From contig JASTWF010000069.1 of assembly GCA_030390025.1 (NCBI GenBank), positions 930,001 to 994,000 of the forward strand: a DNA stretch of 64,000 nt, in the 5' to 3' direction. This DNA comes from Squalus acanthias (lineage: Eukaryota). A program made the position numbers and the translations under genes. The notes under the pieces were generated by a model that worked only from the letters and a program-made list of their open reading frames with translations, did not search any database and was not told where the DNA came from. Positions 5,951 to 27,904 of this stretch are shown one piece after another; position 1 is the first letter of the stretch; the number at the start of each line of letters is the position of its first letter.

Positions 5951-6124
5951 GTCAGCAAAGTCAAAAAACCACCAAAACCATTTTTAATGACTTTCGATTA
6001 CTCTTTGAAAGGTCTGGAGTTTGATAAAATGAGCCTTTTAAGCAAAGTTACATTTTTCGGGCATTTTCAAAATGTACTCGCTGTGTAAAATTTGTTCTGA
6101 AAATCGTGTTCCCGAAAATCTCCC

Positions 6125-7488
6125 GCCACCCCGCCAACCCCCAAGTACAGAAATGACAAGTGTCAAATCAGCGGGTCAAAGGGCCACCTCGGTCCGACCA
6201 GGAGCACCCAAATCGCCGCAAATGGCCAGATTTTATTCTCCATCCAGACTTCCGATTGAGTTCATGATTTCCCACCCGTCAACTCATAAACCAGTGTTCT
6301 CACCACTTGCCAGAAAAAGCACATGACCATTTGCCGGGAGCAACTCGCTTCCTCAAGCGGGAAATCTACACCCGAAGCCCGGGTAAGGCGGCCAAATCCC
6401 AACCCTTCGGACCTCCGGTATAAATTTGAACGGCCATATCTCCGCACTCCGGCGTCGGAGACAAGCGGTTTTGACACCGTTAGCCGCGGATTCCCGGTGC
6501 CCAGTCGAACGCCGCCCCGGCCGACGGCCAGGAAAATGTTTTTAAATTTTCGGCCGATTTCGGGGAAAAAAATTTCCGGCCTGAACTCGGGTCTCTCGGC
6601 CTCAATCGGTTCGGACACGATCGCTTACGGAGGGGAGGCGAATCCCCGGCCTCTGCCGGGCGTCAGGCGGATGTTTTTAAATCCCGACCAAAAATCCGAA
6701 AAATGGGAAAAATGCAAAAAAAATTCACCCAAAAAGGGTATAAAATGTCGTCCCTTTGACTTTTGGTTAACCATTTGTCACTTTCCCACTCAGTCTCTGG
6801 GCCACTTTTGCAAGAATTTTCGTTCGTATGGACGACTTTGTTGAAAAATGTCCCGGCTTTCCAGATGAGCGTTTCCCACTCGGCTCGAGCTCCCCGGGTG
6901 GTTTTTGCAGGCATTTTGCACCTTTTCCAGCGGGGCGGGCGGGGTCACCCTGCCAAGTTTCGGCGCCTGCCGACACGCTCCCCGGTGGGCCACCGCTCTG
7001 GTTCTGGTACCGGCCGATGCCGCTTGCCCTCGTCTTCCGAAAACGGCGCCCCCCAGCAGATCGGTGGCCGGCCCGCCGATTTAGCAGTCGGAAAGCGGTC
7101 TGCAGCCTGACTGCTGTCACCCAGCCGGGCAAAGGCGCAGCTACACCGGTTCGGTACTGGTCTCTTCAGCCCCGCAAGCCCATTCAGGCGCCGTTGACCC
7201 GGTCCGGATTCGACATTTCTGCCCGAAGTTATACCCGATACCGTGCCTGCTGACCGACGTCCCGGCAGGCGGCACGGGATTCCGACACTTTCCCCAACTC
7301 GCCCGGGGCCAGTGCAGCAATATAGTGTGCGCCGGCGCCGGGGCTTTCCAACCAGCCATCCCCGACCCTAATCGGACACGGGACTCGGGAACAAAACCCA
7401 TTTGACTGCGGCCCTGCAAACCGGGGCAAATGGTTAACTGGACATGCTTCAACCAAGCTTTCTACTCACTTCGGGCGTTTTAAACAAG
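6125..7488 (-). repeat. inverted, internally deleted copy of the macrosatellite unit
   Basis: reverse complement of unit sequence (e.g. catccagacttccgattga at ~6241; same spurious ORFs MAHRGACRQAPK on the opposite strand). Confidence 0.9.
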
Positions 7489-7489
7489 C

Positions 7490-8318
7490 TGAAGGATCCA
7501 GCTAGTTCCCAAAGAATTCTGGGATACTTGACTATGTTTAAGCCTCTCATAAAAAAGGCGCTTGTAAGGACTAGCTGTAGATTCAAAGATGGGGCTTAAT
7601 TAAAACGGAGACTGACAACATGCAGCTGGGAACAGATAGCAGGGATGTAAGCCAGGTCGAATATCGAACATCAGAGACCAGTAAAAGTGATAAGGGGATC
7701 GTAAAATGCAAGGAACAGGCACTTTTGCAGGCTGCAAGGCGTCTCTTCACTAATTAAACTTCGGGATGTGTATTCACAGCGCCTTAGTGGAGTCACTGTC
7801 CAAGCACGGCCTGTCCTCCCAGGAGATAAGGGGACCAATTATCAAACATGGTACGAGTTCGCTAGACACATGAATCGCTGTGGCTTTGTGCTTGTTCGGC
7901 AGTTAAGTGTAAAACCGGTCCTCTCGAACAATAAACTATGCTTATAGCGAGGAAGAGATAACAACAGGAATGTGGAGGTAGGGTTACTCCCAACATCTGT
8001 GTCCAGCATGGGCAGGGGAGGGGCACCTGAGTTCAGGGGATGGGCCCAACAGTTGAGTGACTAAACACCGAAACCAATAAAGAGTAACTGTGGTGACGTT
8101 GTTTGTACGTGTACGCCCCCATTCTGTAGTAAGTGGGCGTTGCTTATAGAACTGTATATCTTGAATGAACCGCTGTTTTTCCTTTGTGAGTGCACCTCAA
8201 GCTTGAGGAAGCTGGGTGGCTCCACTTGTGCACAAGTCTCTCTTAGTTGTTTTAATAAATTTTGTTCTTGTCCTCAATTCCATCTCCGTCTAGAGTTTCT
8301 CCAAATTCGAATCGAACA
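7490..8318 (+). mobile_element. possible LTR-like sequence
   Basis: starts tgaagg, AATAAA at ~8254, ends ...cgaaca at the minisatellite junction; no target duplication seen. Confidence 0.35.
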
Positions 8319-9812
8319 TCCTGTTCCTGTGTAACATGCTCGATGATCTGAATCTGCCTGCTCCTGTTCCTGTATAACAGGCTCGAGGGGTTGAATGGGC
8401 CTCCTCCTATTATTGTGTAACAGGATCTAGCGGGCTCAAAGCGTCTCCTCCTGTTCCTGTGTAACAGGCTCGAGCATCTGAATGGGCCTCCTCCTGTTCC
8501 TGTGTAACAGGCTCGAGGGGCTGAATGGGACTCATCCTGTTCCTGTGTAACAGGCTCGAGGGGCTGAATGTGCCTACTCCTGTTCTTGTGTATCAGGTTT
8601 GAGTTGCTGAATGTGCCTCCTTCTGTTCCTGTGAAACAGGCTCGAGGGGCTGAATGGGCCTCCTCCTGTTCCTGTGTAACAGTCCCAAGGGGCTGAATGG
8701 GCCTCCTGCTGTTCATGTGTAACAGGCTCGAGGGGGATGAATAGGCCTCCTCCTGTTCCTGTGTAACAGGCCCAAGGGGCTGAAGGCGCCTCCTCCTCTA
8801 CCTGTATATTAGGATCGAGGGGCTGAATGGGCCTCCTCCTGTTCCTGTGAAACAGGCTCGAGGTGCTGACTGGGCCTCTTCCTGTTCTTGTGTAACAGGC
8901 TCGATGATCAAAATCTGCCTCCTCCTGTTCCTGTGTAGCAGGCTCGAGGGGCTGAATAGGCCTCCTCCTGTTCCTGTGTAACATGTCCGAGGGGCTTAAT
9001 GGGCCTCCTCTTCCTGTGTAATAGGCTTGAGGGGGCTGAATGGGCCTACTCCTGTTCCTGTGTAACTGGCTCGAGGGGCTGAATGGGCGTCCTCCTGTTC
9101 CTGCGTAACAGGCTCGAGGTGCTGAATGGGTACCCTCCTGTTCCTGTGTAACAGGCTCAAGGGGCTGAATGGGCCTCCACCTGTTCTTGTGTTTTAGACT
9201 CGAGTGGCTAAATGGGCCTCCTCCTGTTCCTGTGTAACAGGCTAAGGGGCTGAATGGGCCTCCTCCTGTTCCTGTGTAACAGGCTCGAGGGGGCTGAATG
9301 GGCCTCCTCCTGTTCCTGTGTAACAGGCTCGAGGGGCTGAATTGGACTCCTCCTGTTCCTGTGTAACAGGCTAAGGGGCTGAATGGGCCTCCTCCTGTTC
9401 CTGTGTAACAGGCTCGAGGGGCTGAATGGGCCTCCTCCTGTTCCTGTGTAACAGGCTCGAGGGGCTGAATAGGCCTCCACCTGTTCTTGTGTATTAGACT
9501 CGAGGGGCTTAATGGGCCTCCTCCTGTTCCTGTGTAACAGGCTACGGGGCTGAATTGTCCTCCTCCTGTTCCTGTGTAACAGGCTCGAGGCAGCTGAATG
9601 GGCCTCCTCCTGTTCCTGTGTAACAGGCTCTTTGGGCTGAATTGCCTCCTCCTTTTCCTGTGTATCAGGCTCGAGGGGCTGAATGGGCCTCCTCCTGTTC
9701 CTGTGTAACAGGCTCGAGGGGCTGAATGGGCCTCCTCCTGTTCCTGTGTAACAGCTCGACGGGCTGAATGGGCCTCCTCCTGTTCCTGTGTAACAGGCTC
9801 GACGGTCTGAAT
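8319..9812 (+). repeat. 43-bp minisatellite (cctcctcctgttcctgtgtaacaggctcgaggggctgaatggg)n
   Basis: direct tandem repeats; unit matches the CR1/HE1-type 3' tail. Confidence 0.95.
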
Positions 9813-10062
9813 AGTAATAAAGAGGTAAAAAGCGAGTGTCTGGTGAAAACGCTAAACCACAAGAAGTGCCCAAGCTGCCCATCCACAGCCATGAGGAGGT
9901 TCAATGTATCTCAGATACTGGAACAAGCCCAGCAGCAACCAATGGAGGGTTCAATGTGTCCTGGGTGCTGAAGTAAACTCAATCACAATGATGAGGGAGG
10001 TCGTGAGGGCCTCACAGACAGGCCTGGACCTGCCCTCAAGTTGAAGGTGAAGGAAGATTTCC

Positions 10063-10858
10063 TCAGTGCTCTGTCTTAACATCGTAACCACAGCCGGAAG
10101 ATTCCCCCTGGTCCCTGTGTCTTAACAACATCGTAAACACAGCCAGAAGATTCCCCCCTGGTCCCTGTGTCTCAACAACATCGTAAACACAGCCGGAAGA
10201 TTTCCCCCAGTCCCTGTGCGTTAACAACATCGTAAACACAGCCAGAAGATTCCCTCCGCGTTCCTGTGTCTTAACAACATCGTAAACACAGCTGGAAGAT
10301 TCTCCCCGCATTCCTGTGTCTTAACAACATCGTAAACACAGCCGGAAGATTCCCCCTGGTCCCTGTGTCTTAACAACATTGTAGACACAGCCGGAAGATT
10401 CCCCCCTGGTCCCTGTGTCTTAACAACATCGTAAACACAGCCAGAAGATTCCCCCCTGGTCCCTGTGTCTTAACAACATTGTAAACAGAACCGGAAGATT
10501 CCCCCTGGTCCATGTGTCTTAACAACATCGTAAAAACAGCCGGAAGATTTCCCCCTGGACCCTGTGTCTTAACAACATCGTAAACACATCCGGAAGATTC
10601 ACCCTGGTCCCTATGTCTTAACAACATCGTAAACACAGCCAAAAGATTTCCCGCCAGTCCCTGTGTCTTAACAACATCCTAAAGACAGTGGGAAGATTCT
10701 CCCCCGCCCCCGGTCCCTCTGTCTTAACAACATCGTAAACACAGCCGGAAGATTTCCCCCCAGTCCCTGTGTCTTAACAACATCGTAAACACAGCCGGAA
10801 GATTTCCCCCCACTCCCTGTGTCTCGACAACATCGTAACCACAGCCGGAAGATTTCCT
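10063..10858. repeat. 49-50 bp minisatellite (tcttaacaacatcgtaaacacagccggaagattccccctggtccctgtg)n
   Basis: about 16 direct tandem copies. Confidence 0.95.
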
Positions 10859-11029
10859 CTGAGAAGCAGAGCTGCGACACTACAGCGCCACCACTGGTAG
10901 GAGGGTGTAATTACAACGTGACATGAGGAACACAGGATGGTTTTTTTTTATCCACCCTTTTGTTTGGCCCTTGTTTTTTTTCCCTCGCAGCTGTCCTTCA
11001 TTCTGCCAGCGCATTTCACACTTCATCTC

Positions 11030-11351
11030 GAGCCATCCTTTGTTCCTCAACCTGTCCCATTACCACCTCCTCTTGCCTTGAATATCTCTTAATGTCTCTC
11101 AATGTCTCTTAATCTCTCCTGCTTTCTATCCTATCACTGACCGTTTTTGTTCTTTCATCCCCTCCCGCTTTTCCCAGGCTATACTTGCTTAAAAATCTAT
11201 TTCATTTCCTGCTTTTTTCCAGTTCTGACGAAAGGTCTTCGACCTGAAACGTTAACTCTGTTTCTGTCTCCACGGATGCTGCCTGGCCTGCTGAGTTTTT
11301 ACAGCGTTTTCTGTTGTTATTTTGGATTTCCAGCATCCGCAGTATTTTGCT
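11030..11351 (+). mobile_element. Penelope-like element terminal remnant
   Basis: pyrimidine-rich stretch, then ctgacgaaaggtc..gacctgaaacgttaactctgtttct..gatgctgcc..cctgctgag, a pattern recognised from fish/shark Penelope repeats. Confidence 0.55.
11221..11257 (+). ncRNA. minimal type I hammerhead ribozyme-like motif
   Basis: agtt-CTGACGA-a-aggtc/ttc/gacct-GAAA-c-gtt-aact: both core boxes, 5-bp stem II, palindromic stem III, 4-bp stem I. Confidence 0.55.
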
Positions 11352-11411
11352 ATCAGATCAGCCATGATCTCATTGAATGGCTTGGCAGGCTCGAGGGGCC
11401 GAATGGCCGAC

Positions 11412-12337
11412 TTATAGAGTCATAACGGCACAGAAGGAGGCCATTCGGCCCATTGAGTCTGTGCCAGCTCTCTGTAGAGCAATCCAGTCAGTCCCATTCC
11501 CCCGCTCTATCCCCGTAACCCTGCAAGTTTATTTCCCTCAAGTGCCTATCCAGTCTCCCCTTGAAAACATTGAGTGTCTCCGCTTCCACCACTTCCGTCG
11601 GCAGCGAGTTCCTGGTCCTCAACACTCGCTGTGTAAAAAAGTTTTTCCTCACGCCCCCCTGTATCTCTTGCCCAAAATCTTAAATCTGTGTCCCCTAGTC
11701 CTTGTACCATCAACTAGTGGGAACAGCCTTTCCCCATCTAGCCTATCCAAACCCATCATAATCGTGTACACCTCCATCAAATCACCCCTCAACCTCCTTT
11801 GCACTAATGATAACAAATCCAGCTTCTCCAACCTGTCCTTGTAGCTAAGAACCCCCATCCCCGGAACCATTCTGGTAAATCTCTTCTGCACCCTCTCAAG
11901 TGCCTTCACATCCTTCCTAAAGTGTGGTGACCAGAACTGGATGCAATACTTCAGTTGTGGCCTAACCAACACTTAATAAATGTTCAGCATAACTTCTCTA
12001 CTTTTGTACTCAATACCTCTATTTCTGAAGCCCAAGATCCCATATTCTTTTTTAAGCACTCTCTTAATATGTACTGCCACCTTCAGGGACCTATGCACAT
12101 TAACTCCCAGGTCCCTCTGTCCCTGCACACTCTTTAAAACTGTGCCATTAAGTGTATGTTGCCAATCCCTGTTCCTTCTGCCAAAATGCATCACCTCACA
12201 CTTCTCTGTATTAAATTCCATCTGCCACTTGTCTGCCCATTCTGCTAGCCTTTCTATGTCCTGTTGCAGTCGATTGATGTCATCATCACTGTTTGCCACA
12301 CCCCCAAGTTTGGTGTCATCGGCAAATTTAGAAATTT
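11412..12337 (-). mobile_element. 5'-truncated CR1 LINE nested in the 3' tail of another CR1/HE1-type element (tail halves 11353-11411 and 12338-12362)
   Basis: CR1 ORF2 ORFs 11649-12299; host tail gatcagccatgatc..caggctcgaggggccgaatggcc resumes as gctcctatttcttatgttcttatg. Confidence 0.85.
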
Positions 12338-12438
12338 GCTCCTATTTCTTATGTTCTTATGTAAGAATGGATTTGGATTCCCTGTGGACTGTCTGGTCAA
12401 TGGTTCGAAGCTGACTCCGTATTGGTAAGAGTTCTGAT

Positions 12439-12444
12439 TTTATT
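12439..12444 (-). terminator. candidate polyadenylation signal (AATAAA) of Siglec copy A
   Basis: tttatt on the plus strand, ~700 nt downstream of the stop at 13146. Confidence 0.35.
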
Positions 12445-13145
12445 GAAGCAGCAGTGAGACCGAATACACTCGGTATCTGAGCATCAGTTTACAAAGTACG
12501 ATTGAGAATTGGATTACCCGCTGTTGCCCCCTTTGAGTAGAAGGCCTGGCTCGTTTCCCCCGATCCTCCTCCTCCCCCTGCGTGTCTGCACCTGTCCGGA
12601 TCGGTGTCCTTGCTGGCCCTTCTACACTGAGACCCAGACCAAACCCACCAGGATGTCCCCCAAGAGCCGGAACTGTGGAGAAACCCATCCAACCATAGGC
12701 ACGGCGGGTTCTCTGTGTCCAGGCACAGGCTCTGGGCCTCCCTTATCTGCTTTTTACCCTCAGCACAAGCTCTTTCGGTGCTTGCTTTCTGTTTCCATGG
12801 AGATAAGGCAACCCAGGAACTAGAGGACAATGGGTTCCCACTGTAAATAAAATCTAGACTTTAATAGACTTTCCCCTGATTCTAACAGAGGAGAAATGAG
12901 ACTAAATTAATAAAACTGTAAACTAGAAATCTTAATATTAAACTACAATCTAGCAAAGCTTAATGCTGAAAATTAGCAAAAGGGATTTGTATTTGGGTAT
13001 GTTTCAACGACTCACAAAGCTTTGCGCGTTCCCACTGATTGAGAAAGAGATAAAAGATAAGCTGCAGGCGGCTCTGACTCTCCCTTGTTCTTTCCCTCGC
13101 TTTTCTAGCAATGAGAAGTGTGCTCGTGGGGGCGAGCGCTCGGCT

Positions 13146-13339
13146 TTAGTCAGTTGTCCGATGAAATAAGTGGTCAGGCCGCTGATTCCCGACTCCCGTA
13201 TCCTCACAGCTCTCAACAGGCTCTCGGCTTCCTTTAGCTGGTCTTCGGTCCCAGACGCCAACCCCAGTGACCGTGGCGATGACGGCGAGAATGAATATCG
13301 CAGCTCGTATTCCCAGGATCTGAATCGTGTGCAGAGTGC
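13146..13339 (-). CDS. Siglec A exon 5: transmembrane ([23 protein letters not shown]) plus 34-aa cytoplasmic tail and stop
   Basis: acceptor tttcttgctgtatgtttccag; phase-1 join C|GC gives Arg after ...TITVE; 23-aa hydrophobic run followed by DRR; non-repeat island between two CR1 copies. Confidence 0.7.
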
Positions 13340-16300
13340 CTGGAAACATACAGCAAGAAACGATGACTTACTCTCCGCTTTCGATCCCTCGCTGTGCTCT
13401 CCCTGTTCCTTCTGCCAAAATGCATCGCCTCACACTTCTCTGTATTAAATTCCATCTGCCACTTGTCTGCCCATTCTGCTAGCCTTTCTATGTCCTGTTG
13501 CAGTCGATTGGTTTCATCCTCACTGTCTGCCACACCCCCAAGTTTGGTGTGGTCGGCAAATTTAGAAATTCTACTCTATATTCCAATATCTAGATCATTT
13601 ATATATATATTAAAAAAAAGCAGTGGCCCCAGAACTGACCTTTGGGGAACACCACTGTCTACCATCCTCCAGTCTGAAAAACAGCCATTTACCACAACTC
13701 GCTGTTTTCTGTCCTTAAGCCAATTCCTTATCCAAGCTGCCACTGACCCACCTATTCCATGAGTCTCAATTGTTAACCAGCCTTCTATGTGGTACTTTGA
13801 CAAACACCTTCCGAATACCAATGTAGACAACATCCATTGCATTCCCTTCATCAATCATCCCTGCTATTTCATCAAAAAATTCAGTTAGATTCGTCAAACA
13901 CGGTCTGCCTTTTACAAATCCGTGCTGGCTCTCCTTAATTAGCTTAAACCTCTCCAAGTGCCTGTTAATTTTTTCCTTGATTATTGTTTCTAAAACTTTA
14001 CCCACCACTGATGTTAAACTGACCGGCCTATAGTTACTAGGATTGTCCTTACACCCTTTCTTGAACAATGGTGTCACATTTGCTATTTTCAAATCCTCAG
14101 GCACCTCCCCCGCATCTATGGAAGATTTGAAAATTATGGCAAGCCCTTCCGCAATCTCCTCCCCCAATTCCCTTAGCAACCTGGGATGGAAGCCATCTGG
14201 ACCAGGCGACTTATCCACTCTAAGCATACCCAGCCTTTCTCGTACATCCTGTCTATCAATTTTCACTCTTCCATTGCTGCTACCTTTTCCACTTCTACCG
14301 ATATTTTGTCAGCATCCACCTCCTTAGTAAACACCGATACAAAGTACTTATTGAGTATTCTAGCCTTGCCCTGCGCCTCTAAGCATATATCACCTTTTTC
14401 TCTGATAGGCCCCATCCTGCCTCTTATTACCCGCTTAATTTTTACAGGGCCACTGTTTACATGCCGGTAGAAGATTTTTGCGTTCCCTATTATGTTAACC
14501 GCCATTCTACTCTCATATTCTCTCTTTGCCAATCTTATTTTCATCTTCACTTCCCCTCTCAACTTATTGTATTTGGTCTGGTACTCCCTTGAAGAATTCA
14601 CCTGACATGCACCATACACCCTCTTTTTTTGTTTCATCATCTTCTCTATCTCCCTCGTCATCCAAGGAGCCCATGCTTTGGTTCCCTTACCCTTCCCTCT
14701 TGTTGGAATGTACCTAGCCTGTACTTGGAACATCTCCTCCTTAAAGATCACCCATTGTTCCATTACTTCCTGTCAGTCTTTGGTTCTATTTTACCCTGGC
14801 TAGATCCTTTTGCATCCCATTGAAGTTAGCCCTAATCCAGTTTAGAAGTTCCACTCTAGATTGTTCCTTGCTCCTCTCCATTGCTGATCTAAACCTTATG
14901 ATACGATGATCACTCGTACCCAAGTGTTCTCCCACAGACACTTGGTTGACCTGGCCCACCTCATTTCCCAGCACCAGATCCAGCAATGCCTCCTTCCTAG
15001 TTGGGCCAAGAACATACTGGTCAAGGAAATTCTCCTGAACACATTTCAGAAATTCCTCCCCTCCTTTCCCTTTACCCTAGCATTATCCCAATCGATATTT
15101 GGGTAATTAAAGTCTCCAATATCACCACTCTATAGCTCTTGCATATCTCTGCGATTTCCCTGCAGATTTGCTCCTCTACCCCCCTCTCACTATTTGGAGG
15201 CCTATAGAATACCCACAATAGCGTGATCATACCCTTTTTGCTCCTCAACTCTAACCAAATGGATTCTGTCCTTGTCCCCTCAAGAACATCCTCCCTTTCC
15301 AACACTACAATGTCTTCCTTAATCAGCACTGCCACCCCACCTCCCTTTTTTCCTTCCCTATCTTTTCTGAACACCTTGTACCCTTGAATATTAAGTGCCC
15401 AGTCCTCACCGTTTTTAAGCCACGTTTCCGTTATTGTCACAACATCATATTGCCACACGGCTAATTGTGCTTGTCGCTCAACAACATTATTCACCACACT
15501 TTGTGTGTTTACGTACATGCATTCTAAACGCATTTTTGAATTTTTCGTAGTCTTTCTTAGTTTGCTCCTATCTAATATGGTACTACTTCCGCCTCTAGAA
15601 GTACTTCCTTCTCTAGTACTCTCCAACACACTCACTCTTTTATGCACCTTATTCCTCTTTTCTACTCCTATATGCTGGTCAGAAGTGGTAATAAGTTCAG
15701 AAGTGGGGATGTTCGCTGATGACTGCACAGTGTTCAGCGCCATTCGCAACTCCTCAGATAATGAAGCAGTCCGTGCCCGAATGCAGCAAGACCTGGACGA
15801 CACTCAGGCTTGGGCTGACAAGCGGCAAGTAACATTCGTGCCACACAATCGCTGTGTACCATCTACAAGATGCACTGCAGCAACTCGCCAAGACTTCTTC
15901 GACAGCACCTCCCAAACCCGTGACCTCTACCACCTAGAAGGACAAGGGCAGCAGGTGCATGCGAACACCACCACCTTCTCAAGGGCAATTAGGGATGGAC
16001 AATAAATGCTGGCCTTGCCAGCAACGCCCACATGACAGGAATGAATAATTAAAAAACTGCACTTCAAAAGTGCTTCATTGGCTGTAAAGCACTGAGGGAC
16101 TACATAAGCGTTACATAAATGCAAGTCTTCACGTTCTATGAAATATCTATATATGTAATATTTATAAGTGTAATATCTAAAGATGTAATATTAGTCGACC
16201 TCCAGTTTCTCCCTATCTACTCTGTCAAAACAACTCATTTTGAACGCCTCTATTAAATCTACTGTTAACCTTCTCTGCTCTAAGGAGAACAACCCCAGCT

Positions 16301-19300
16301 TCTCCAGTCTCTCCATGTGACTGAAGTCCCTCATCCCTGGGACCATTCTGGTCAATCTCCCCTTAACCTTCTCTGCTCTAAGGAGAACAACCCCAGCTTC
16401 TCCAGTCTCTCCACATCACTGAAGTCCCTCATCCCTGGAACCATTCTGGTAAATCTCCCCTTAATCTTCTCTGCTCTAAGGAGAACAACACCAGCTTCTC
16501 CAGTCTCTCAATGTGACTGAAGTCCCTCATCCCTGGAACCATTCTGGTCAATCTGCTCTTAACCTTCTCTGCTCCAAGGAGAACAACCCCAGCTTCTCCA
16601 GTCTCTCCACATCACTGAAGTCCCTCATCCCTGGGACCATTCTGGTCAATCTCCCCTTAACCTTCTCTACACTAAGGAGAGCATGGGAGACTGGTCAAGA
16701 AGGTAAGAGCCCATGGGTTCCAGGGCAACTTGGCATATTGGATCCAAAATTGGCTTACTGGCAGGAGGCAGAGGGTGATGGTCGAAGGTTGTTTTTGTGA
16801 CTGGAAGCCTGTGTCCAGTGGTGTACCACAGGGATCGGTGCTGGGTCCTTTGCTGTTTGTAGTGTACATTAATGATTTAGATATGAATGTAGGAGGTATG
16901 ATCAGTAAGTTTGCAGATGACACGAAAATTGGTGGGGTGGTAAATAGCGAGGAGGGAAGTCTCAGGCTGCAGGACGATATAGACGGGTTGGTCAAATGGG
17001 CAGAGCAGTGGCAAATGGAATTTAACCCTGAAAAGTGTGAGGTGATGCATTTTTGGGAGGACTAACAAGGCAAGGGAATACACAATGAATGGTAGGACCC
17101 TAGGAAGCACAGAGGATCAGAGGGACCTTGGCGTGCATGTACATAGATCCCTGAAGGCAGCAGGACAGGTAGAAAAGGTGGTTAAAAAGGCATTTGGGAT
17201 ACATGCCTTCATTAGCCGAGGCATAGAATATAAGAGCAGGGAGGTTATGATGGAGCTGTACAAAACGCTAGTTAGGCCACAGCTGGAATACTGTGTGCAG
17301 TTCTGGTCGCCACACTATAGGAAGGATGTGATTGCATTGGAGAGGGTGCAGAGGAGATTCACCAGGATGTTACCTGGGCTGGAGCGCTTCAGCTATGAAG
17401 AGAGACTGGACAGGCTGGGGTTGTTTTCCTTAGAGCAGAGAAGGCTGAGGGGGGACCTGATTGAGGTGTACAAAATTATGAGGGGCTTAGATAGGTAGAT
17501 AGAAAGGAACTTTTCCCCTTAGTAGAGGGGTCAGTAACCAGGGGGCATAGTTTCAAGGTAAGGGGCAGGAGGTTTAGAGGGGATTTGAGGAACAACTTTT
17601 TCACCCAGAGGGTGGTTGAATCTGGAACTCACTGCCTGAAAGGGTGGTAGAGGCAGGAACCCTCACAACATTCAAGAAGCATTTAGATGAGCACTTGAAA
17701 CACCATAGCATACAAGGCTACGGACCAAGTGCTGGAAAATGGGATTACAATAGACAGGGCTTGATTGCCGGCGCGGACACGGTGGGCCGAAGGGCCTCTT
17801 TCTGTGCTGTATAACTCTATGACTCTATGAGAACAACAGTTCTGCCTGATGCAACAACCAGCTGTCTTGTATCAGACAACAACAACCAGCTTGTATTTAG
17901 AGAGATGTGGAAGTACCTGTAGACTCACGTTCCACAGTGATGGTTATGGTCCTCTCCACTGCTCCATGTCCATTCTCCGCCACACACTGATAGTCTCCAG
18001 CGACCCTGGGTGTAACGTGAGGAATCTCCAACCACAGCTCGTTGTTGGAACTTGTTCTGTTCATTGTGACACCATGATGTCGCCAGGTCAGGTTAGAAGC
18101 CGGGAAGCTCACGACAGAGCAGAGTATCGCTGTAGAATTCCCTTCTTTGATATTGATCAATGAATTTTTAATCGTATCACGAGAAATAATGGAGAGATTC
18201 CGTGGGGCGTCTAAAGACAAATTAAGATCAGTTAACGTACATCGGCTGTGAAGCACTTTGAGAGACGCTGAGAATGTCAAAGGTGTGATATCAAAGCAAG
18301 TTCCTTCATCACAAAGCAGGTAATCCAAGCAGACACTTTAGTGCAGTACTGAGGGAGCGCCGCACTGTCGGAGGGTCAGTACTGAGGGAGCGCTGTCGGA
18401 GGGGCAGTACAGAGGGAGCGCCGCAGTGTCGGAGGGGCAGTACTGAGGGAGCGCCGCACTGTCGGAGGGGCGGTACTGAGGGAGCGCTGCACTGTCGGAA
18501 GGTCAGTACTGGGGGAGAGCCGCACTGTTGAAGGGACAGTACTGAGGGAGTGCCGCACTGTCGGAGGGGCAGTACTGAGGGAGTGCTGCACTATCGGCGG
18601 GGTAGTACTGAGGGAGCGCCGCACTGTTGGAGGGACAGTACTGAAGGGAGTGCTGCACTATCGGAGGGACAGTACTGAGGGAGTGCCGCACTGTCGGAGG
18701 GACAGTACTGAGGGAGCGCCGCACTGTTGGAAGTGCTGTCTTTCACATGAGACATTAAACCGAGGGAACGTCTGCCCTCTCAGGTGGATGTAAAAGATCC
18801 CATGACACTATTCAATGAAGAGTCCTATCTGTAAAATACAGATGATCTTGACATCAGAACCATTGCTGCTTGTGGGATCTTGCTGTGCGCAAAGTAGACT
18901 ATCACGGGTAATGTAGAATTAAGGATGTCCGTACTTACATTGCACAGTGAGTGCGAGGGTCTGCTCCGATGAAACAGATGGATATCTGACTCTGCAGGTG
19001 AGAGTTTGTCCGTGGTGTTTGAGTGATGGAATCAGGGACAGAACAGAAGTATATGTCAGAGTGACGCCATGCTGAGTTACACTGTTTGAGACTGACCCGG
19101 GTACGTCAGTGGGATTGACCCAGGTTAAGACAGGTGCTGTTCCAGTGCACGTGGTGTTGAAGGTGCAGCTTACGTTCACACGCTTTCCTGCAATCATTTC
19201 AGCAGGGAATATCCTGGGTTTATCTGTGAAATCTAACACACAGAGAATGGATCCTTTTAGATAAATATAACGTGAGGCATCAGTTCAAATAGAAATCACA

Positions 19301-22300
19301 GTCCCGCAAGAGAAAGTACTTTGACCCGGATAATACCAGAACTGAGAGGTTACAACGATCAGGAAAGATTGAACAGGCTGGGGCTCTTTTCTCTAGAAAA
19401 GAGAAGGCTGAGGGGTGACCTGATAGAGGTCTTTAAAATTATGAAGGGGTTCGATAGGGTAGACGGAGAGAAGGTATTTCCACTTGTGGGGGAGACCAGA
19501 ACTAGGGGCCATCAATATAAGATAGTCAGTGATAAATCCAATAGGGAATTCAGGAGAAACTTCTTTTCCCAGAGAGTGGTGAGAATGTGGAACTCGCTAC
19601 CACAGGGAGTGGTTGAGGCGAAGAGCAGAGATGCATTTAAGGGGAAGCTGAATAAACACATGAGGGAGAAAGGAATAGAAGGATATGTTGATGGGGTGAG
19701 ATGAAGAGGAGTGGGAGGAGACTGGTGTGGAGCATAAACACCGGGATGGACCAGTTGTGGTGAATGGCCTCTTTCTGTGCGGCAGACTTGATGTAACTTT
19801 GTGTGAATCTGCTAAGAAGAAATTGTTTCCTATTTCCAGGATTGGCGGAGTGTCTGTCACTGAGCTTAATACACTTTCTCTCCGAGACCCTTGAATTGAC
19901 TATACTGGGTGGGGGTGAAGGACCTGGTCACAGCCCCAGGAACACTGGCTCTCCACTCACTCAGAGATCTCTGCCAATGTTAAATTAAATCCTCTCCACG
20001 GCAGGACAGAACCAATTTGCAATTATCCCTCAACCAAAACATAAAAGAAAGACTTGCATTCCCACAGCTCATTTCATGACCTCAGGACGACCCAAAGTGC
20101 TTGACAGCCAATTAAATACTTCTAAAGTGTTAAACCAGATGATCTGGTCATTATCACATTGCTGTTTGTGGGAGCTTGCTGTGCGCAAACTGGCTGCCAC
20201 GTTTCCTACATTACAACAGTGACTACACTTCAAAAAAAGAACTTAATTGGCTGTGAAGCGCTTTGGAACCTCCTGAGGTGGTGAAAGGTGCTGGAGAAAT
20301 GTGAATCTGTCTTTTGTCTGTATGTAAGACTTTTAAACACGATTAGAGAGATATATGGGAGTCGATAACCTGATAACAATGATGGACACAGTCAAGACAT
20401 TCAATCATTGATAATAAAGTGAGTATTAGAGGTTGCTTTAGGACTGAACTGGAAGGTATCGCCAGGTTATTGATAATCAGACACTGTGTTATAATAAGCT
20501 GTGTTTTGTGTTAATGTGTAACCGCCACAGTTTCTGTTATTTCCCACTGACTGTTGAGCGTGAATTGTGGAGTAATTATAACCCAGCACTTACCAGAAAC
20601 ATGAAGCTGTGTTACAGGGTGGTAGTTAAACCGAACACTGTTGTCAAAATCTATTCTGAAATAATAAGTTCCTGCGTCTCGCTGTGTGATGTTGTTTATA
20701 ATCAGGGAACAGTCACCATCTCTCAGGTCTCCAGACAGCCGGGTCCGATGGTGAAACTGTGGCGACTCACGATTGTGATCCTTGGAGTGAAAGGCTATAG
20801 GCGATGATCTCCATTTCTCATAATTATACCAGATTCCAACTCGCGATTGGTTTGCCAGATGCGATGGATAAGTGTAATGACATGGAATCTGTGCACACAA
20901 ACCTTCCTGTGCTGTCACCACTCGTGGAGTCTTGCCTTTCCACACCTCTGACAATACAGCTGGGGAGAGAAATATCAATATTTAGCACTGGATGGCTTGT
21001 CGCTCCACTGGACTCGATATCCACCCCCTCCGTCACTGGCGCACAGTGTCTGCAGTGTGGACCATCTACAGGACACACAAGGAACTCACCAAGGTTACAT
21101 TGACAGCACCGCCCTCCCCTGCGACCTCTACCACCCAGAAGGACAAGAGCTACTGAGACAACACAATCCAAGAATGAATATCAAACACTGCGCACCGTGT
21201 TCTGTGATTGGGGAGCATTATAGTGAACCCACATGTCGGACAGACTCATAGTCACCTTGCCCGTGGACATCGCACCCGCCTGTCCTCATGCCTTTTCCTC
21301 AGCATACAATGTTTCTGTATGTGAAGACAATTCTTGACCCAACAGATGGCTCCATCAACCCAACGGATGGAAGGGAATCCTCGGCACGGGAGTGGACAAG
21401 TTCATTCTATATTGGCTCACAGACCTCAGGACCCTGTTCAGTGAAGTAGGTCTTCCACCCAACACAATGCCTAAATGACGCACCCATTGAGGAATATTCT
21501 GTGCTGACTTACAAGGCAGGAACAGTGGATTAGGATCCATCAGAACTCATGCCACTATCTCCATCCTGAATCACTAGAGTCATAGAGTCACACGGCACAG
21601 AAGGAGGCCATTCGGCCCATCGAGTCCGTGCCGGCTCTCTGTAGAGCAATCCAGTCAGTCCCATTCCCCCGCTCTATCCCCGTAGCCCTGCAAGTTTATT
21701 TCCCTCAAGTGCCTATCCAGTCTCCCCTTGAAAACATTGAAGGCTGGATTTTGTCAGTGTGGGGCGGTGTCAGGTGGAAATCGTGTCGGGACCCCGACTC
21801 CTAAGTGAAGTGCTGAAATAGTGGGATTTTCCCCTAATTGTGCAATTGATTTCCTGGGTGTGGGAACCCCTGGCCCAATGAGTCTTTTCAGACAGAAAGT
21901 CGCCTTCGATGACATCATCAATGCTGCTGGATTTAAGACCTGCAAGCAGCCTTGCTTCTTCTGGAGACTGGAAACGCTTTGGAAATTGTAGGAAGGAATA
22001 ATTTACCGACCATGTGCACCAGCAAGCAAAAGTGTGCACCTCGGTTTGATGAGCCCTCCCTCCAAGCTCTGGTGCATGGAGCCAGATGTAATAAGGAGGT
22101 GCTGTTCCCTTCCTCGGGGAGAAAAAAGCCACCCCAGCAGACAAAAGCTGTGTGGCTGCAAGTGGCCCAGGAGGTCAACTCCATTTCGCTGAGCCGCAGA
22201 ACCTGGCTGCAGTGCAGGAAGAGGTTTCATGACCTTCTCCACACAGGAAAAGTGAATATGACATTCCCATCACACTCAATCTGATCCCCATCGCCTCTCC

Positions 22301-25300
22301 TCACCAGCACTCTGCTTTGCCAACCTCTTCCTCCACATCCCACTTGACACTTACATTCCTGCACCCTTACCCATTCTCTCTCTCTCTCGAAGGTCACATT
22401 CACTTAACTATTCAACTATGCAGCCCTCACACTCCCTATCACTGTGATGCCATGACAACAACAACTTTTATCACACAGGGAGGGTCCTTTGTATCCTTCT
22501 AAGCATCTATGCTCTGGATTCTCTACACTCACTCCTTCATTCTCACTCAAACTCCACTTGTGTCCCTCATTGCAGGAAAAGAGAGCCCACAATAAGAGGG
22601 AAAGAGCCATGACAGGAGGAGGGCCACCCTCAGTAGCCCAGCTCACTGCCTGGGAGGAGGCGGCCCTGGAAATCGCCAGGATCGAGGAGGATTCCCAAGT
22701 GGGGGACGGACAGATGGGCGCATCACAGCAAGCTGGTGACAGAATAGTTTAGCATCTCTCTCATTGACATTGCATGGGTCACTGATAATGAATCTGATGC
22801 TCTAACAGATTGACTTATGATCATCTGCACTATTCAATGTTCATGTAACCTTGACCTCACATCTCTAACTCTTTCCTTTACTCCCCCATAGGACCATTGA
22901 AAGCCCCTGTCCCCACTGTCCAGGAGGAAGAGCCTGAGCTTCCAGACTCCTCAGAGGAAGCTGCAACCTCTGAGGGCGCAGCCTCAGCAGAATTCAGCGC
23001 ACCCAGCACCAGCGCAGACACTCACACCTCGGTGGGACCTTCGCGAGATAGAGTAGTGTTGGCACCTGGTTTATCACAGCTCACAAGTGAGCTTCAGCAG
23101 ATGGTGGAGACAGGGACAGCAGTGGAGAGGCCTCGTCGGAGGGCGCAGGACTCTGCCAGCTTGGCTCAGCTGCATGTCGACCCTGTGCCTCCGGGTCCAT
23201 CCAGAAGGAGAGCGGTGCTGGAACTCCAGGAACAGGTGCAGGAGTCTCTGGCAGGTTTTGTCTCCAGGGTTGCTGCGAGTGTCGAGCAAATGGAGAAGTC
23301 CATCGCGAACATGAGCAGAGCCTTTGTGGAGGCATTGGCGCATGAACGCATCACCACGGAAAGGATGGCAACCTCTGTGGAAAGGATGGCTACGGTAGAG
23401 GAGAGGATGGCTAAGGCCATGGAGGAGCTAAGTCGCCAGAGTGTAGAAAACATGTTCATTGTTCAGAATAGACTGGCATCTCTTGAGGCGCGATGGTCAG
23501 CTACTGAGCATAGAAACCAGACCTTCATGGAAGTCCTCTGGAGTAGGACTTGCAGTGCAGAAACGGGTCCTCATGGCCCCCCTGAAGTGCAGCAAGGTGC
23601 TGTCAAGCCACTTGCTAGCTCTGAAGTGGGGCTGACCCATGAGAGGGATATTGGTGGCAGACAACAAGGAAGTGGGGGCTCCTCTCCAAGCGCTCAAACG
23701 ACCATGCCACTGCAAAGCCCTCGGTCAGAGCCCCACCAGAGTCCTCATCCCAACTGAGATGGGCATCTCAGCCCCTGCACAGCCGCAGGAGCAGCAGACT
23801 GTTGCCGAGCCCTCACAGGTTCGCAACCCCAGAGGACGGCCGCCAAAGGTGTCGAGACAGGAGCAGCAAGAAAGTGAGCAAGGGGCGTCCACATCTGCTG
23901 TAGCCACAGGGGAAGCACCACGTAGGAGCACGCGTAAGAGGAAGATAATGCACAAGTAGTCACATGGGTAGTCACTTGGGTGTTATGTTGTGTTTATTTT
24001 TGAAATGCCACCAGTTGCTTGATGTGATAAAAAATTCTGATGGCAAACTGTTGAAGTTGTGGCCTGTGTCATTTTGCAAATGGAACTTCTACATTGAGGG
24101 CTTAGAGCGACTTGCAATCGTCAGTATGGTGGTCAGAGTTATAGGAATCCGTAGGTTCTTGTCCATTGTCGATGCTCTGGTAAGAACGTGCGAGGCAAAG
24201 GTGTTTGATTGTACAGGCTAAGCAAATGTGACCAACATGAGTGTGTCCCTTGCATCCCGGGCAGCAATATGGTCGTGCTCTGGTGACTTCTGGCCTGTGC
24301 ATCTTCAGGTGGGTGAGCAGCAGCTTGGCGCTCCTGTTGATGCTCCTGCTGTTGGTGCTGCTGTTGTTCATGGTTCTGCTGCTGCCGCGGCTGGTCTTCA
24401 TCCGAATCTGATGTCCAGGAGGAAAGGAAATATATGGTTCCCATGCTTCTGGTATATGCCTCAGTTGAGGAAGCGCTTAGTCAAGGTGGGGAGAGGGGTT
24501 TCCCAGGAGGTCACACTGGAGATGGGTGTCAGGCTCCAAACTTCCACAACACTGAGTAGGCCTGCTAAAAGTTCCCCCAGACCTGAAACAACAAAGTTCT
24601 ACCACCTGCAAATGATCATCGGTGAAAACTCCTTCGTAATGGTGGAGCTGCAGCTGTTGGTAAGCAGTCCACTTGTGAGGCCGCCAGCATTACCTGGCGT
24701 GTTCCAGAGGAGGCGTGAGGGATGGGGGGAATGACTAAAAATCGGAAAGGCCTCTCAAAATGGGATTATAGAGGCTATTAAGTGGTTGTTAAGGGCCTTA
24801 AGGGCCTATCCCGCCTCTTGGAGGCGGATGGAAAGGGGGTCAGAAAACACGCATTTGGGAAAAATGCTCGGAGGTGGGATGGAGGCGGGATTGGGCCTGC
24901 CCGCCAGTTTTTCCTCACATCCCCCCTGTATCTCTTGCCCAAAATCTGTGTCCCCTAGTCCTTGTACCATCAACTAGTGGGAACAGCCTTTCCCCGTCTA
25001 GCCTATCCAAACCCGTCATAATCTTGTACAACTCTATCAAATCACCCCTCAACCTCCTTTGCTCTAATGGAAACAAATCCAGCTTCTCCAACCTGTCCTT
25101 GCAGCTAAGATCCCCCATCCCCGGAACCATTCTGGTAAATCTCCTCTGCACCCTCTCAAGGGCCTTCACATCCTTCCTAAAGTGTGGTGACCAGAACTGG
25201 ACGCAATACTCCAGTTGTGGCCTAACCAGCGCTTTCTAAAGGTTCAGCATAACTTCTCAACTTTTGTACTCAATACCTCTATTTATGAAGCCCAAGATCC

Positions 25301-27083
25301 CATATGCTTTGCTAACCACTTTCTCAATATGTCCCGCCACCTTCAGGGACCTATGCACATTAACTCCCAGGTCCCTCTTTCACTGCACACTCTTTAAAAC
25401 TGTGCCATTAAGTGTATATTGCCTCTCCCTGTTCCTTCTGCCAAAATGCATCACCTCACACTTCTCTGTATTAAATTCCATCTGCCACTTGTCTGCCCAT
25501 TCTGCTAGCCTTTCTATGTCCTGTTGCAGTCGATTGGTATCATCCTCACTGTTTGCCACACCCCCAAGTTTGGTGTTGTCGGCAAATTTAGAAATTCTAC
25601 TCTGTATTCCAATATCCAGGACATTTATATATATCAAAAAAAGCAGTGGCCCCAGCACTGACCCTTGGGGAACACCACTGTCTACCATCCTCCAGTCTGA
25701 AAAACAGCCATTTACCACAACTCGCTGTTTTCTGTCCTTAAGCCAATTCCTTATCCAAGCTGCCACTGACCCACCTATTCCATGAGCCTCAATTTTGTTA
25801 ACCAGCCTTCTATGTGGTACTTTGTCAAACGCCTTCCCAAAATCCATGTAGACAACATCCATTTCATTCCCTTCATCAATCCTCCCTGTTACTTCAACAA
25901 AAAAATCAATTAGATTAGTCAAACACGATCTGCCTTTTACAAATCTGTGTTGGCTCTCCTTAATTAGCTTAAACCTCACCAAGTGTCCGATAATTTTTTC
26001 CTTGATTATTGTTTCTAAAATTTTACCCAACACTGATGTTAAACTGAATGGACTGTAGTTACTAGGATTGTCCTTACACCCTTTCTTGAACAATGGTTTC
26101 ACATTTGCCACTTTCCAATCTTCAGGCACCTCCCCCGCATCTAGGGAAGATTGGAAAATTATGGCAAGCCCTTCCGCTCTCTCCTCCCCCAATTCCCTTA
26201 GGAAGCCTAAACCTCTTGTTTGCTCTTCAGCCTCCCGATTGTCTAAGCTGGTGAATTTTGGATCCTCATTGTCTAAGGAATCACTTTGGATCCTCATTGT
26301 CTAAGGAATCACTTTGGATTCATGTCTAAGGAATCACTTTGGATCCTCATTGTCTAAGGACTATCTTTGGATCCTCATTGTCTAAGGAATCACTTTGGAT
26401 TCTCATTGTCTATGAAATATAACTGCACAGCAGATCAGAGGCAAACAGAGAAACTATATATATGACACCTTTATACACTTCCTGTCTTGTTTGCTTGTTA
26501 TCTTAACCACATCTTGCACCCTTACCATGGTATGAGGACTGAACTGCCTGTCTATTCTAAGCGCTGCTGTGTTGTTGTCATGGTGACCTGTAACTAAAAT
26601 TTGGATCTCTGCGCTCCTTCAATTCTGGCCTCTTGTCCATCCCCGAGTTTTAGGGAGGGAATTCCAGAGCTTAGGGTCGAGACGGCTGAAGGCACGGCCG
26701 CCATTGGTGGAGCGATGGAAATCGGGGAGGCACAAGAGGCCAGAATGGGTGGAACGCAGAGATCCCGGAGGCTTGCAGGGCTGGAGGAGGTTACAGAGAT
26801 AGTGAGGCAGGGGGCGAGGCCATGGAGCGATTTGAAGACGAGGATGAGGATTTTAAATTTGGGGCGTTGCCGGACCGGGAGCCAATGTAGATCAGCGAGC
26901 GCAGGGTTGATCTGTGAACGGGACTTGGTGCGAGTTAGGACACTGGGTCACTGCTGAATTTGGTCCCCAATCATAGCTCAATAAGAATGATCTTTCACAA
27001 AGACTATTAACCATAAATATGTCCGAGCTGACGATGATATTACCTTGGAGAAGTGACAGGAGGAAGTAAGATTTCCTGATCAT
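13146..27083 (-). CDS. Siglec-family receptor copy A (CD33-related/MAG/CD22-like), 5 coding exons, 391 aa, V-C2-C2-TM, predicted activating
   Basis: exons 27083-27044, 20959-20594, 19232-18939, 18210-17929, 13339-13146; all GT-AG, all phase 1; total 1176 nt, open frame. Confidence 0.85.
13395..15670 (-). mobile_element. CR1 LINE with endonuclease and RT regions, frameshifted
   Basis: [20 protein letters not shown] (endonuclease), [21 protein letters not shown] (RT). Confidence 0.92.
15686..16040 (+). mobile_element. fragment of a second CR1-type LINE family
   Basis: [20 protein letters not shown] motif. Confidence 0.7.
16262..16680 (-). repeat. 98-bp tandem repeat (about 4.2 copies) made from a CR1 ORF2 segment
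   Basis: ttaacc/ttaatc at 16265, 16363, 16461, 16559, 16657; unit is antisense to the [17 protein letters not shown]-coding region. Confidence 0.85.
16681..17830 (+). mobile_element. 5'-truncated CR1 LINE with 3' microsatellite tail
   Basis: [18 protein letters not shown]; ends ctctatgactctatga. Confidence 0.92.
17929..18210 (-). CDS. Siglec A exon 4: Ig C2-set domain 3
   Basis: (Y)[29 protein letters not shown]...[12 protein letters not shown]; acceptor ttgtctttag, donor gtgagt; 282 nt. Confidence 0.9.
18330..18895 (+). mobile_element. Deu-domain (SacSINE1-like) SINE with internal 33-bp tandem expansion
   Basis: (gggagcgccgcactgtcggaggggcagtactga)n followed by gtcttt..atgagacattaaaccgagg..ctctcaggtggatgtaaaagatcccatg. 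Confidence 0.75.
18939..19232 (-). CDS. Siglec A exon 3: Ig C2-set domain 2
   Basis: [39 protein letters not shown]; acceptor tgttag, donor gtaagt; 294 nt. Confidence 0.92.
19320..19800 (+). mobile_element. CR1 3' fragment in intron 2 (mirrored at ~62990-63465)
   Basis: [34 protein letters not shown]. Confidence 0.85.
20045..20312. mobile_element. two oppositely oriented SINE 3' fragments (mirrored at ~62478-62745)
   Basis: tggctgtgaagcgctttgg..cctgagg..gaaag tail present in both orientations. Confidence 0.65.
20594..20959 (-). CDS. Siglec A exon 2: sialic-acid-binding V-set domain
   Basis: [40 protein letters not shown]: Siglec Cys pattern and F-strand Arg (20655-20657); 366 nt, AG/GT. 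Confidence 0.93.
21741..24906 (+). mobile_element. PIF/Harbinger DNA transposon derivative: Myb/SANT gene kept, transposase largely deleted, right end lost
   Basis: starts aggctggatttt; absent from the right arm; encodes a Myb/SANT-like protein; about 65 bp of flanking CR1 is missing at the right junction. Confidence 0.75.
22012..23757 (+). CDS. Myb/SANT-like (trihelix) DNA-binding protein of Harbinger type; exons 22012-22251, 22576-22735, 22892-23757
   Basis: APRFDE..L..LV..LFP...W..VA..VN.....[12 protein letters not shown] | [18 protein letters not shown]; GT-AG introns in compatible phases, 1266 nt; coiled-coil-like C-terminal part; probable frameshift before the ancestral end at 23959. 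Confidence 0.75.
26260..26412. repeat. 28-bp tandem repeat (ggatcctcattgtctaaggaatcacttt), mirrored at ~58606-58712
   Basis: direct repeats, about 5 copies on the left and 4 on the right. Confidence 0.85.
26600..26945 (-). mobile_element. L2 LINE 3' fragment (mirrored at ~57657-58000)
   Basis: encodes ..LADLHWLPV....[14 protein letters not shown], typical L2 C-terminus. Confidence 0.75.
27044..27083 (-). CDS. Siglec A exon 1: signal peptide [13 protein letters not shown](A)
   Basis: ATG, hydrophobic core, CAAG|gtaat phase-1 donor joining to (G)CT GTA TTG TCA; identical in both arms. Confidence 0.8.
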
Positions 27084-27904
27084 TGTCCACTCCCAGATAT
27101 TTCATCAACTTCTCACTCTCAAGGTCTGAAAGAGAAAGGAGTTAATGAGACCTCACCTCTTGCCCGACAGCTCTCGAGAGATCAAAACTGCTTTGAGACT
27201 ATGTCTTCACTAATTTTACTCACTGTGGGATGATAGGTGCTCTGCAGTGAGTTACAAGGCTTTAAGAAAGAAAAACAAAGGAATACTTGCATTTCTCCAG
27301 ACACTTTCACCACCTTAGGACATCCCAAATAGCCTCACAGCCAATGAAGTACTTCTTACAGTGTAGTCACTGTTGTAATGTAGAAAACGCGGCAGCCAAA
27401 TTGCACACAGCAAGATTCCACAGACGGCGATGGGATAAACGGTCAGACTGTCTGTACTTGATGTTACCGAAACTCACTGCTTGGGTCGAATGGCCTCTTC
27501 CTGTGCTGCACCCTCTGTGTATTCAATTAGAAAGGGTTGATGTGTCGCTGTGAGTTAAATCAGGAAGCGGGCAACAAGTGAGAAAACATCACTTTGTCCG
27601 GCCCTATAAGCAAACTGTTAACCCTTTGTGTCCTGACACTCTGAAGATATTTCTGCTGGAAGCTGGGCAGCCGTTGCCATGGAGTTTCCACCGGGGCTCA
27701 GTGGGTTTAACTCTCTTTCTCTCCCTCTCTCTCTCCCTCTCTCTTTCTCTCGCCTCTGAGTCAGAAGGTTGTGGGCTCAGAGACTTTTGAGTGATGCTGG
27801 TTGAGGGATAAATATTGGCCCCAGGACACCGGAGAGAACTCCTCCTGAGCTAAGGAAATACGTCATTTCTAGATTGCTAGATTATTGATGGTTAATGATG
27901 TCAA

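Follow-up and report, generated by a model that had tools for sequence, protein, structure and literature searches.

We describe a gene on the minus strand of a stretch of Squalus acanthias DNA (assembly GCA_030390025.1, contig JASTWF010000069.1, positions 930,001 to 994,000 of the forward strand; this whole stretch of 64,000 nucleotides (nt) is called the window below) which probably encodes an intact Siglec-like receptor of the CD33-related type, with an arginine inside its transmembrane (TM) segment, and is predicted to be an activating receptor that is coupled to an adaptor. The gene occupies positions 13146-27083 of the window and consists of five exons with canonical AG/GT splice sites and phase 1 at every junction, in the order signal peptide, Siglec V-set domain, two C2-type immunoglobulin (Ig) domains, and an Arg-bearing TM segment with its cytoplasmic tail. 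The exon lengths, 40 + 366 + 294 + 282 + 194 = 1176 nt, amount to 391 codons and a stop codon. A preliminary description of the window had proposed five phase-1 exons, scattered among repeats, that splice into a V-C2-C2-TM protein of 391 residues, and the splice sites, phases and lengths agree with this model. The locus reads as a real, intact gene of a large Siglec-like family in sharks. Its coding exons are the following:

27044-27083, minus strand: coding part of exon 1, with the ATG at 27083, 13 codons plus 1 base of the signal peptide, and the donor gtaata.
20594-20959, minus strand: V-set exon, 122 codons, acceptor ...ccccag, donor gtaagt.
18939-19232, minus strand: C2a, the first C2-type Ig exon (Pfam C2-set_2), acceptor ...tgttag, donor gtaagt.
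17929-18210, minus strand: C2b, the second, C2/I-type Ig exon (Pfam Ig_3 and I-set), acceptor ...ctttag, donor gtgagt.
13146-13339, minus strand: last coding exon, with a short stalk, Arg-bearing TM segment, tail and stop (taa, 13148-13146), acceptor ...tttccag.

The exons were translated and searched singly, and not as the joined protein of 391 residues. The region of exon 1 (27043-27111) is covered in a tblastn search with related proteins, and the N-terminus MIGKSYFLL is common to 12 of the 16 relatives displayed, while P0012 starts with MIRKSYFLL, like the product of the window gene.

By all sequence criteria examined, the gene is a Siglec, and its product is predicted to bind sialic acid. 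The V exon matched the Pfam families V-set (9.1e-14) and Ig_CD22 (1.5e-9), C2a matched C2-set_2 (3.5e-8) and C2b matched Ig_3 (3.9e-11) and I-set (1.1e-9); furthermore, C2a is 78% identical to residues 259-372 of P0003 from Mustelus asterias. The best matches of the V exon in the PDB were Siglec-5 (1.8e-13), MAG (2.1e-13) and Siglec-8 (2.3e-13), followed by CD33 (5.9e-13) and sialoadhesin (7.6e-13), with Siglec-15 (5.5e-7) and CD22 (0.0083) much weaker. The canonical arginine, found here in YYFRI, aligns to the ligand-binding arginine of YFFRV in Siglec-5 and of YYFRG in MAG, in agreement with the Siglec-type V domain proposed in the preliminary description. Siglecs are recognized by three cysteines in the V domain, an intrasheet pair and one interdomain cysteine, and by an extra cysteine in the first C2 domain. 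All three V-domain cysteines are kept (GLCAQIPC and GDCSL align with GLCVLVPC and KNCSL of Siglec-5), and C2a carries the extra one (SCTFNTTC...LTC). The PDB E-values fail to separate Siglec-5, Siglec-8 and CD33 (1.8e-13 to 5.9e-13) from MAG and sialoadhesin, with only Siglec-15 and CD22 clearly further away, and as far as such comparisons go the V domain alone gives no placement in a Siglec subgroup.

The last exon lies in an open reading frame (ORF) of 67 residues (13146-13349, minus strand) and has no match in Pfam. Its translation contains a hydrophobic run of 23 residues, in which the arginine is the fifth (best 19-residue Kyte-Doolittle window, 2.31), followed by a cytoplasmic tail of 34 residues with no tyrosine:

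13305-13307, minus strand: Arg codon cga inside the TM segment, in an alignment column that is invariant in 8 of 8 sequences.

Both the position of this codon and the length and composition of the tail are as the preliminary description had given them. When the exon was compared by local blastp with 150 representatives of the family, two matched, both at their extreme C-termini: P0006 of Scyliorhinus torazame (60% identity over 40 residues, E 1.3e-9) and P0021 of Chiloscyllium punctatum (61% over 36 residues, E 2.3e-8), which carry the automatic NCBI labels "Siglec-12" and "Siglec-13", respectively. Searches seeded with the C-termini of these two proteins added another five, namely P0151-P0154 from C. 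punctatum and Hemiscyllium ocellatum, labelled CEACAM5-like, CD22-like and sialoadhesin-like, and P0155 from S. torazame, labelled pIgR-like. The same C-terminal module, which we call the LGIRA cassette, thus ends seven NCBI-annotated proteins from S. torazame, C. punctatum and H. ocellatum, so that proteins with this cassette are already present in the automatic annotation of three sharks. Its homology to the C-termini of annotated shark proteins rules out that the last exon is an ORF by chance.

Across the eight aligned cassettes the pattern L..I.ILGIRA.IF...V..TV....V is invariant, that is, the arginine and 13 other columns. In each of the seven relatives the arginine occupies position 8 of 26; their tails end 7-15 residues past the hydrophobic window, and none of these tails contains a tyrosine. 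The claim of a basic TM residue combined with a short tail that lacks an immunoreceptor tyrosine-based inhibitory motif (ITIM) is upheld by the translation, by the invariant arginine and by scans of the DNA downstream, given below. The exon borders within P0021 correspond exactly to those of our model, with ...LQVS/DFTDKP at the V/C2a join, ...LTVQ/YAPE at C2a/C2b and ...ITVQ/YSRGEILHVILILGIRA at C2b/cassette, and in two other species the cassette directly follows a C2b-like exon in the NCBI models. The last Ig domain before the cassette is C2b-like in P0006 and P0021, C2a in P0155 and of an unrelated CEACAM/CD22-like kind in P0151-P0154. Because it is preceded by different Ig domains, the cassette appears to act as a shuffled module. 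We tentatively suggest, as a possibility that we hold with less than even confidence, that galeomorph sharks possess in the LGIRA exon a shared and shuffled activating module, by which members of several Ig-receptor families, including Siglecs of the CD33-related type, have been converted to adaptor-coupled receptors. No similarity of the TM/tail cassette was detectable outside the sharks in the protein and PDB searches made here, the sole match of the TM exon in the PDB being one by chance (E 0.78). A search with the 63-residue exon peptide among transcript-derived proteins gave no candidate, a weakly informative result as only proteins of 35-110 residues were eligible.

Transcript evidence was sought in 24 public runs, none of which is recorded as RNA and 18 of which were guessed to be so; Logan contigs from runs X1, X2, X8 and X19 were compared with positions 12500-18400. 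Contig X2-17, of 682 nt, follows 12698-13338 colinearly at 99% identity, with five differing letters and an insertion of 10 nt behind 13178, and past 13338 it has 31 more letters, which depart from the intron sequence. In contig X1-2 (536 nt), the last 105 letters match 13340-13236 with five differences and are preceded by 431 letters unmatched to the region. These contigs show the acceptor of the TM exon in use, as both stop matching within one base of it. In run X1, a joint from 18210 to 17929 (one that "goes back 282") corresponds to a transcript with two exons of the C2b type in tandem; since it falls at the exact borders of C2b, both of these borders are confirmed and X1 contains spliced RNA. 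The splice from C2b to the TM exon (17929 to 13339) would, we infer, take place at the window locus as well. The 3' untranslated region (UTR) is given by X2-17:

12698-13145, minus strand: 3' UTR, minimum extent, from the colinearity of contig X2-17.

Depth in X1 and X2 is zero at 12500-12696. No AATAAA polyadenylation signal was found from the stop codon to 12560, where one ATTAAA occurs near 12866. Read by hand, the 10-nt insertion (between 13178 and 13179) duplicates the adjacent ten bases and shifts the frame, so that a tail with the insertion would stop after four different residues and still be free of tyrosine; it may represent a difference either between alleles or between paralogs.

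The family to which the gene belongs is large. With the V exon as query, 1.84 billion representatives were scanned without a profile, and 1386 matches were obtained at E<=1e-3, 34 of them at E<=1e-30, with 71% as the best identity. Relatives were found, under automatic NCBI names, in M. asterias ("Siglec-12" and "Siglec-13"), Scyliorhinus canicula ("Siglec-8"), Cetorhinus maximus ("Siglec-12"), Carcharodon carcharias ("CD33-like"), Stegostoma tigrinum ("Siglec-10"), H. ocellatum ("Siglec-11") and Hypanus sabinus ("Siglec-12" and "Siglec-14", partial). The nearest proteins from outside the cartilaginous fish, among those looked up, were "Siglec-6" of Arapaima and Scleropages, "Siglec-12" of a tree frog and Ig proteins of turtles. 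We also observed that the sialic-acid arginine is replaced by lysine in the V domain of P0021 (YYFKVEF), while the window gene and P0006 keep it.

Several of the 43 closest representatives have an uncharged TM segment (WT.GL..AGI...) and a tail of 93-113 residues with ITIMs of the LLYASI/ILYANI type, and these ITIM-tailed relatives also carry a distal motif of the TEYAQIRF type. Both LLY[AI]xI or ILYANI and TEYA[QL]IRF are present in the tails of P0005, P0011 and P0014; P0029 has TEYAQIRF, with a proximal LLYANP that departs from the ITIM pattern. We take this pair of motifs in the sharks to resemble the pair in the tails of the mammalian CD33-related Siglecs. The window gene itself has neither the ITIM nor the TEYAQIRF-type motif, and inhibitory relatives with 63-69% identity in the V domain occur in other species.

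The gene is embedded in repeats and is accompanied by an inverted partial duplicate, here called copy B. The relevant features are the following:

13397-15803, minus strand: long interspersed nuclear element (LINE) in the intron between C2b and the TM exon, in the same orientation as the gene, with RVT_1 (1.6e-8) at 13769-14266 and Exo_endo_phos (3.9e-6) at 15075-15803.
57521-63848, plus strand: copy B, made up of exon 1' (57521-57560), V' (roughly 61831-62194) and C2a' (roughly 63555-63848); the 3' part falls outside the window.
27103-27105, minus strand: upstream ATG, out of frame, 22 nt before the main ATG; also in copy B, at 57499-57501 on the plus strand.
8319-9812, 27911-34245, 41142-47930 and 50849-54538; and 18343-18731, 40676-41144, 49753-50851 and 55101-56649: satellite arrays (43-bp, 33-bp).

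The similarity of the LINE to other copies ends at 13397, while the copy at 24909-26374 extends about 514 nt further. To be cut at the 3' side is unusual for a LINE insertion, which points to a deletion or recombination breakpoint beside the cassette exon, and this breakpoint could be a trace of exon shuffling. Copy B is 94-96.5% identical to the gene from exon 1 to C2a; positions 18870-21585 match 63916-61205 at 96.5% over 2.7 kb, and the similarity ends about 70 nt after C2a (18870 = 63916). In C2a' there is one silent base difference. The V exon of copy B is broken as assembled, since V' differs by 17 substitutions and has lost 1 bp at each of two places, opposite 20828 and 20614.

The frame that starts at the upstream ATG is 95% identical to the first 20 residues of isoform X2 of C. 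carcharias (P0029). Its context is weak (T at -3, as compared with A at this position for the main ATG), and leaky scanning may therefore be involved. The 43-bp and 33-bp satellite arrays fill much of the space between the inverted copies and downstream and give rise to long spurious ORFs, and one 33-bp array (18343-18731) lies within the intron between C2a and C2b. An ORF in intron 1 (21952-22281, plus strand) encodes a Myb/SANT-like domain (Myb_DNA-bind_5, 8.2e-9) and is probably derived from a transposon, and an adjacent ORF of 286 residues (22897-23754) has no match in Pfam.

How would such a receptor work? In the mechanism that we propose, the V domain would bind sialylated ligands via the retained arginine of its F strand, and the receptor alone would be unable to signal. 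The buried arginine would instead pair within the membrane with the aspartate of a small adaptor of the DAP12, CD3-zeta or FcR-gamma kind that carries an ITAM (immunoreceptor tyrosine-based activation motif). Ligand binding would then lead to an activating signal, which would make the receptor a counterpart of the ITIM-bearing inhibitory members of its family. Sialic-acid binding, adaptor pairing and the activating outcome are all predicted here from the protein sequence. The combination of one buried basic residue with a short tail free of motifs is described as the accepted signature of receptors that use Asp-bearing ITAM adaptors (PMC8102735, excerpt), and the strong conservation of the helix, set beside the drift of the tail, argues for a specific partner within the membrane. 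A search of the window in six frames for the pattern D/ExxYxxL/I(6-9)YxxL/I revealed no gene for an ITAM adaptor.

As to the identity of the partner, the rule that places an arginine at TM position 4 for FcR-gamma and a lysine at position 9 for DAP12 (PMC8102735, excerpt) gives no clear answer. The arginine is the fifth of 23 residues in the window gene because a glutamine interrupts the hydrophobic run, and in the relatives, where it is the eighth of 26, it is close to the position-9 lysine of the DAP12 type and further from the position-4 arginine of the FcR-gamma type. The preliminary description had read the gene as an activating sialic-acid receptor of the FcR-gamma rather than the DAP12 type. 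The activating reading stands as far as the exon model, the Siglec V domain and the activating-type architecture are concerned, whereas the preference for FcR-gamma does not, given the position of the arginine in the relatives and the report, as excerpted, that no FcR-gamma homolog was found in cartilaginous fish (PMC4016189). The position of the arginine does not decide the adaptor, and sequence cannot tell which one would be used. If FcR-gamma is truly absent in the cartilaginous fish, the partner would be a DAP12-like or CD3-zeta-like chain or an adaptor that is yet to be described.

We considered the possibility that the TM exon is internal, in which case the following donor would be used and ITIM exons would follow, making the product an inhibitory receptor:

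13202-13207, minus strand: gtgagg within the exon, which could serve as an alternative donor; the single contig that covers it (X2-17) reads through it.

Splicing at this donor (at 13207) would yield an exon of 132 nt with phase 1-1, and 30 loose matches to the ITIM pattern occur in the three minus-strand frames of positions 1..17929, including IVYEKL twice in a repeat of about 2.2 kb. All of these matches, however, fall within ORFs of LINEs, within satellites or within short open segments, and they were rejected as candidates for downstream ITIM exons. Contig X2-17 runs through the donor and on for about 450 nt of UTR beyond the stop, and the proteins of the relatives end 7-15 residues after the TM segment. 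A tblastn search of the window with 44 relatives (E<=1e-3) recovered only exon 1, V, C2a and C2b, the inverted copy and repeat-derived matches, and a search with 14 TM-plus-tail segments of relatives found no inhibitory TM or ITIM-tail exon anywhere in the window, the best matches (E 0.007 and weaker) being to satellite or non-coding DNA. An inhibitory receptor made in this way, a possibility that the preliminary description had itself raised, therefore appears highly improbable to us.

Several observations weigh against an adaptor-coupled activating receptor at this locus. The joint from 17929 to 13339 is absent among the 15 joints listed, of 90; the two contigs that reach the acceptor differ from the window, and may therefore come from alleles or paralogs; the runs were only guessed to be RNA; and the LINE truncated at its 3' side, 57 nt from the TM acceptor, marks a rearrangement. 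Furthermore, the distal tail varies freely in length, from 7 to 34 residues, so that constraint would be confined to the TM segment and the juxtamembrane part, a buried arginine is compatible with other partners too, and the screen by Akula et al. 2014 found no FcR-gamma homolog in cartilaginous fish, in the shark data then available (PMC4016189, excerpt). The missing joint, the divergent contigs and the breakpoint would fit a locus where the Arg-bearing exon is expressed and yet is not the 3' end of the window gene, either because it is an orphan exon after a rearrangement or because the locus is decaying, with a secreted product or none; the two deletions in the V exon of copy B indicate that decay does occur in the cluster. 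Nevertheless, the five exons are open and have good splice sites, X2-17 shows 99% identity across 641 nt, UTR included, as fits an allele of the window locus, and the models of two species join a C2b-like exon to the same cassette. Nor is there another gene upstream of the TM exon on the minus strand within the window, or another TM exon in it. We therefore consider an orphan exon or a decaying locus quite unlikely.

It is also conceivable that the gene is as modelled but that its product is not coupled to an ITAM adaptor, being an ITIM-less decoy or silent receptor, or that the arginine serves another chain or an adaptor of the DAP10 kind. The reported lack of the FcR-gamma chain would be in line with this, as would a tail that has no known motif and drifts in its distal length. 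Against such a product, the TM segment is far better conserved than the tail, with 14 invariant columns in eight sequences from long-diverged orders, and the cassette is reused behind different ectodomains, as a signalling module would be. Moreover, this architecture nearly always means pairing with an ITAM adaptor in mammals and teleosts (PMC8102735, excerpt). We regard a product of this kind as rather unlikely and favor the hypothesis of an activating receptor that is coupled to an ITAM adaptor.

Our findings bear on the history of the Siglecs. Fish are said to have only Siglec-1, CD22, MAG and Siglec-15 and to be without CD33-related Siglecs, a statement made for teleosts (PMC7226832, excerpt), and we found nothing in the open-access literature on activating or CD33-type Siglecs of cartilaginous fish. 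Within the shark family, some members have CD33-type ITIM tails and others an Arg-TM cassette, which suggests that the pairing of inhibitory and activating receptors among fast-evolving Siglecs is either much older than the mammalian CD33 cluster or convergent. If the cassette is indeed a shuffled activating module, paired Siglecs of the CD33 type would predate the split between cartilaginous and bony vertebrates, though teleosts are said to lack them. The value of the findings lies in this picture of the family and not in the single locus, because the gene is one of many copies and its relatives are already in the automatic annotation at NCBI. The conserved cassette could also serve as bait for finding the ITAM adaptor of the cartilaginous fish, for which the literature is negative as regards FcR-gamma.

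The closest parallels are human Siglec-14, which is paired with Siglec-5, and Siglec-16, which is paired with Siglec-11. Like the window gene, these have a V-set domain with the canonical arginine, C2 domains, a basic TM residue and a short tail without an ITIM, and their sister genes are alike at the 5' end and different at the 3' end, just as copy B is alike from exon 1 to C2a only. They differ in that the shark cassette has no similarity outside the sharks in our searches; the Siglec numbers of the shark proteins are automatic NCBI labels that do not imply orthology. Within the sharks, P0006 and P0021 share with the window gene the type of signal peptide, the V-set domain, the C2 domains and the C-terminal LGIRA cassette, but their V domains are 55-62% identical to it, they have more C2b-like domains or two V domains, and their tails comprise 9-13 residues as compared with 34. 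Siglec-15 is likewise an activating Siglec with a basic TM residue that is known in fish (PMC7226832, excerpt). Its V domain is, however, far more distant (E 5.5e-7 as compared with 1.8e-13 for Siglec-5), and it has a lysine, one C2 domain and a conserved single-copy gene, whereas the window gene is a member of an expanded and fast-evolving cluster.

Beyond the Siglecs, receptors that use FcR-gamma with an arginine in the TM segment (KIR2DL4 and the activating KIR of macaques) and those that use DAP12 with a lysine have the basic residue in the outer half of the membrane, as is also the case here; the rule of position 4 or 9 (PMC8102735, excerpt) compares with position 5 of 23 in the window gene and 8 of 26 in the seven relatives. 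Finally, the MDIR of skates and the NITR and LITR of teleosts are paired families with charged TM segments that are already present in cartilaginous and bony fish (PMC3031540, excerpt). They resemble the shark family in this respect, but their V domains are like those of CD300, TREM and pIgR, and not of the Siglec type that is seen in the window gene.

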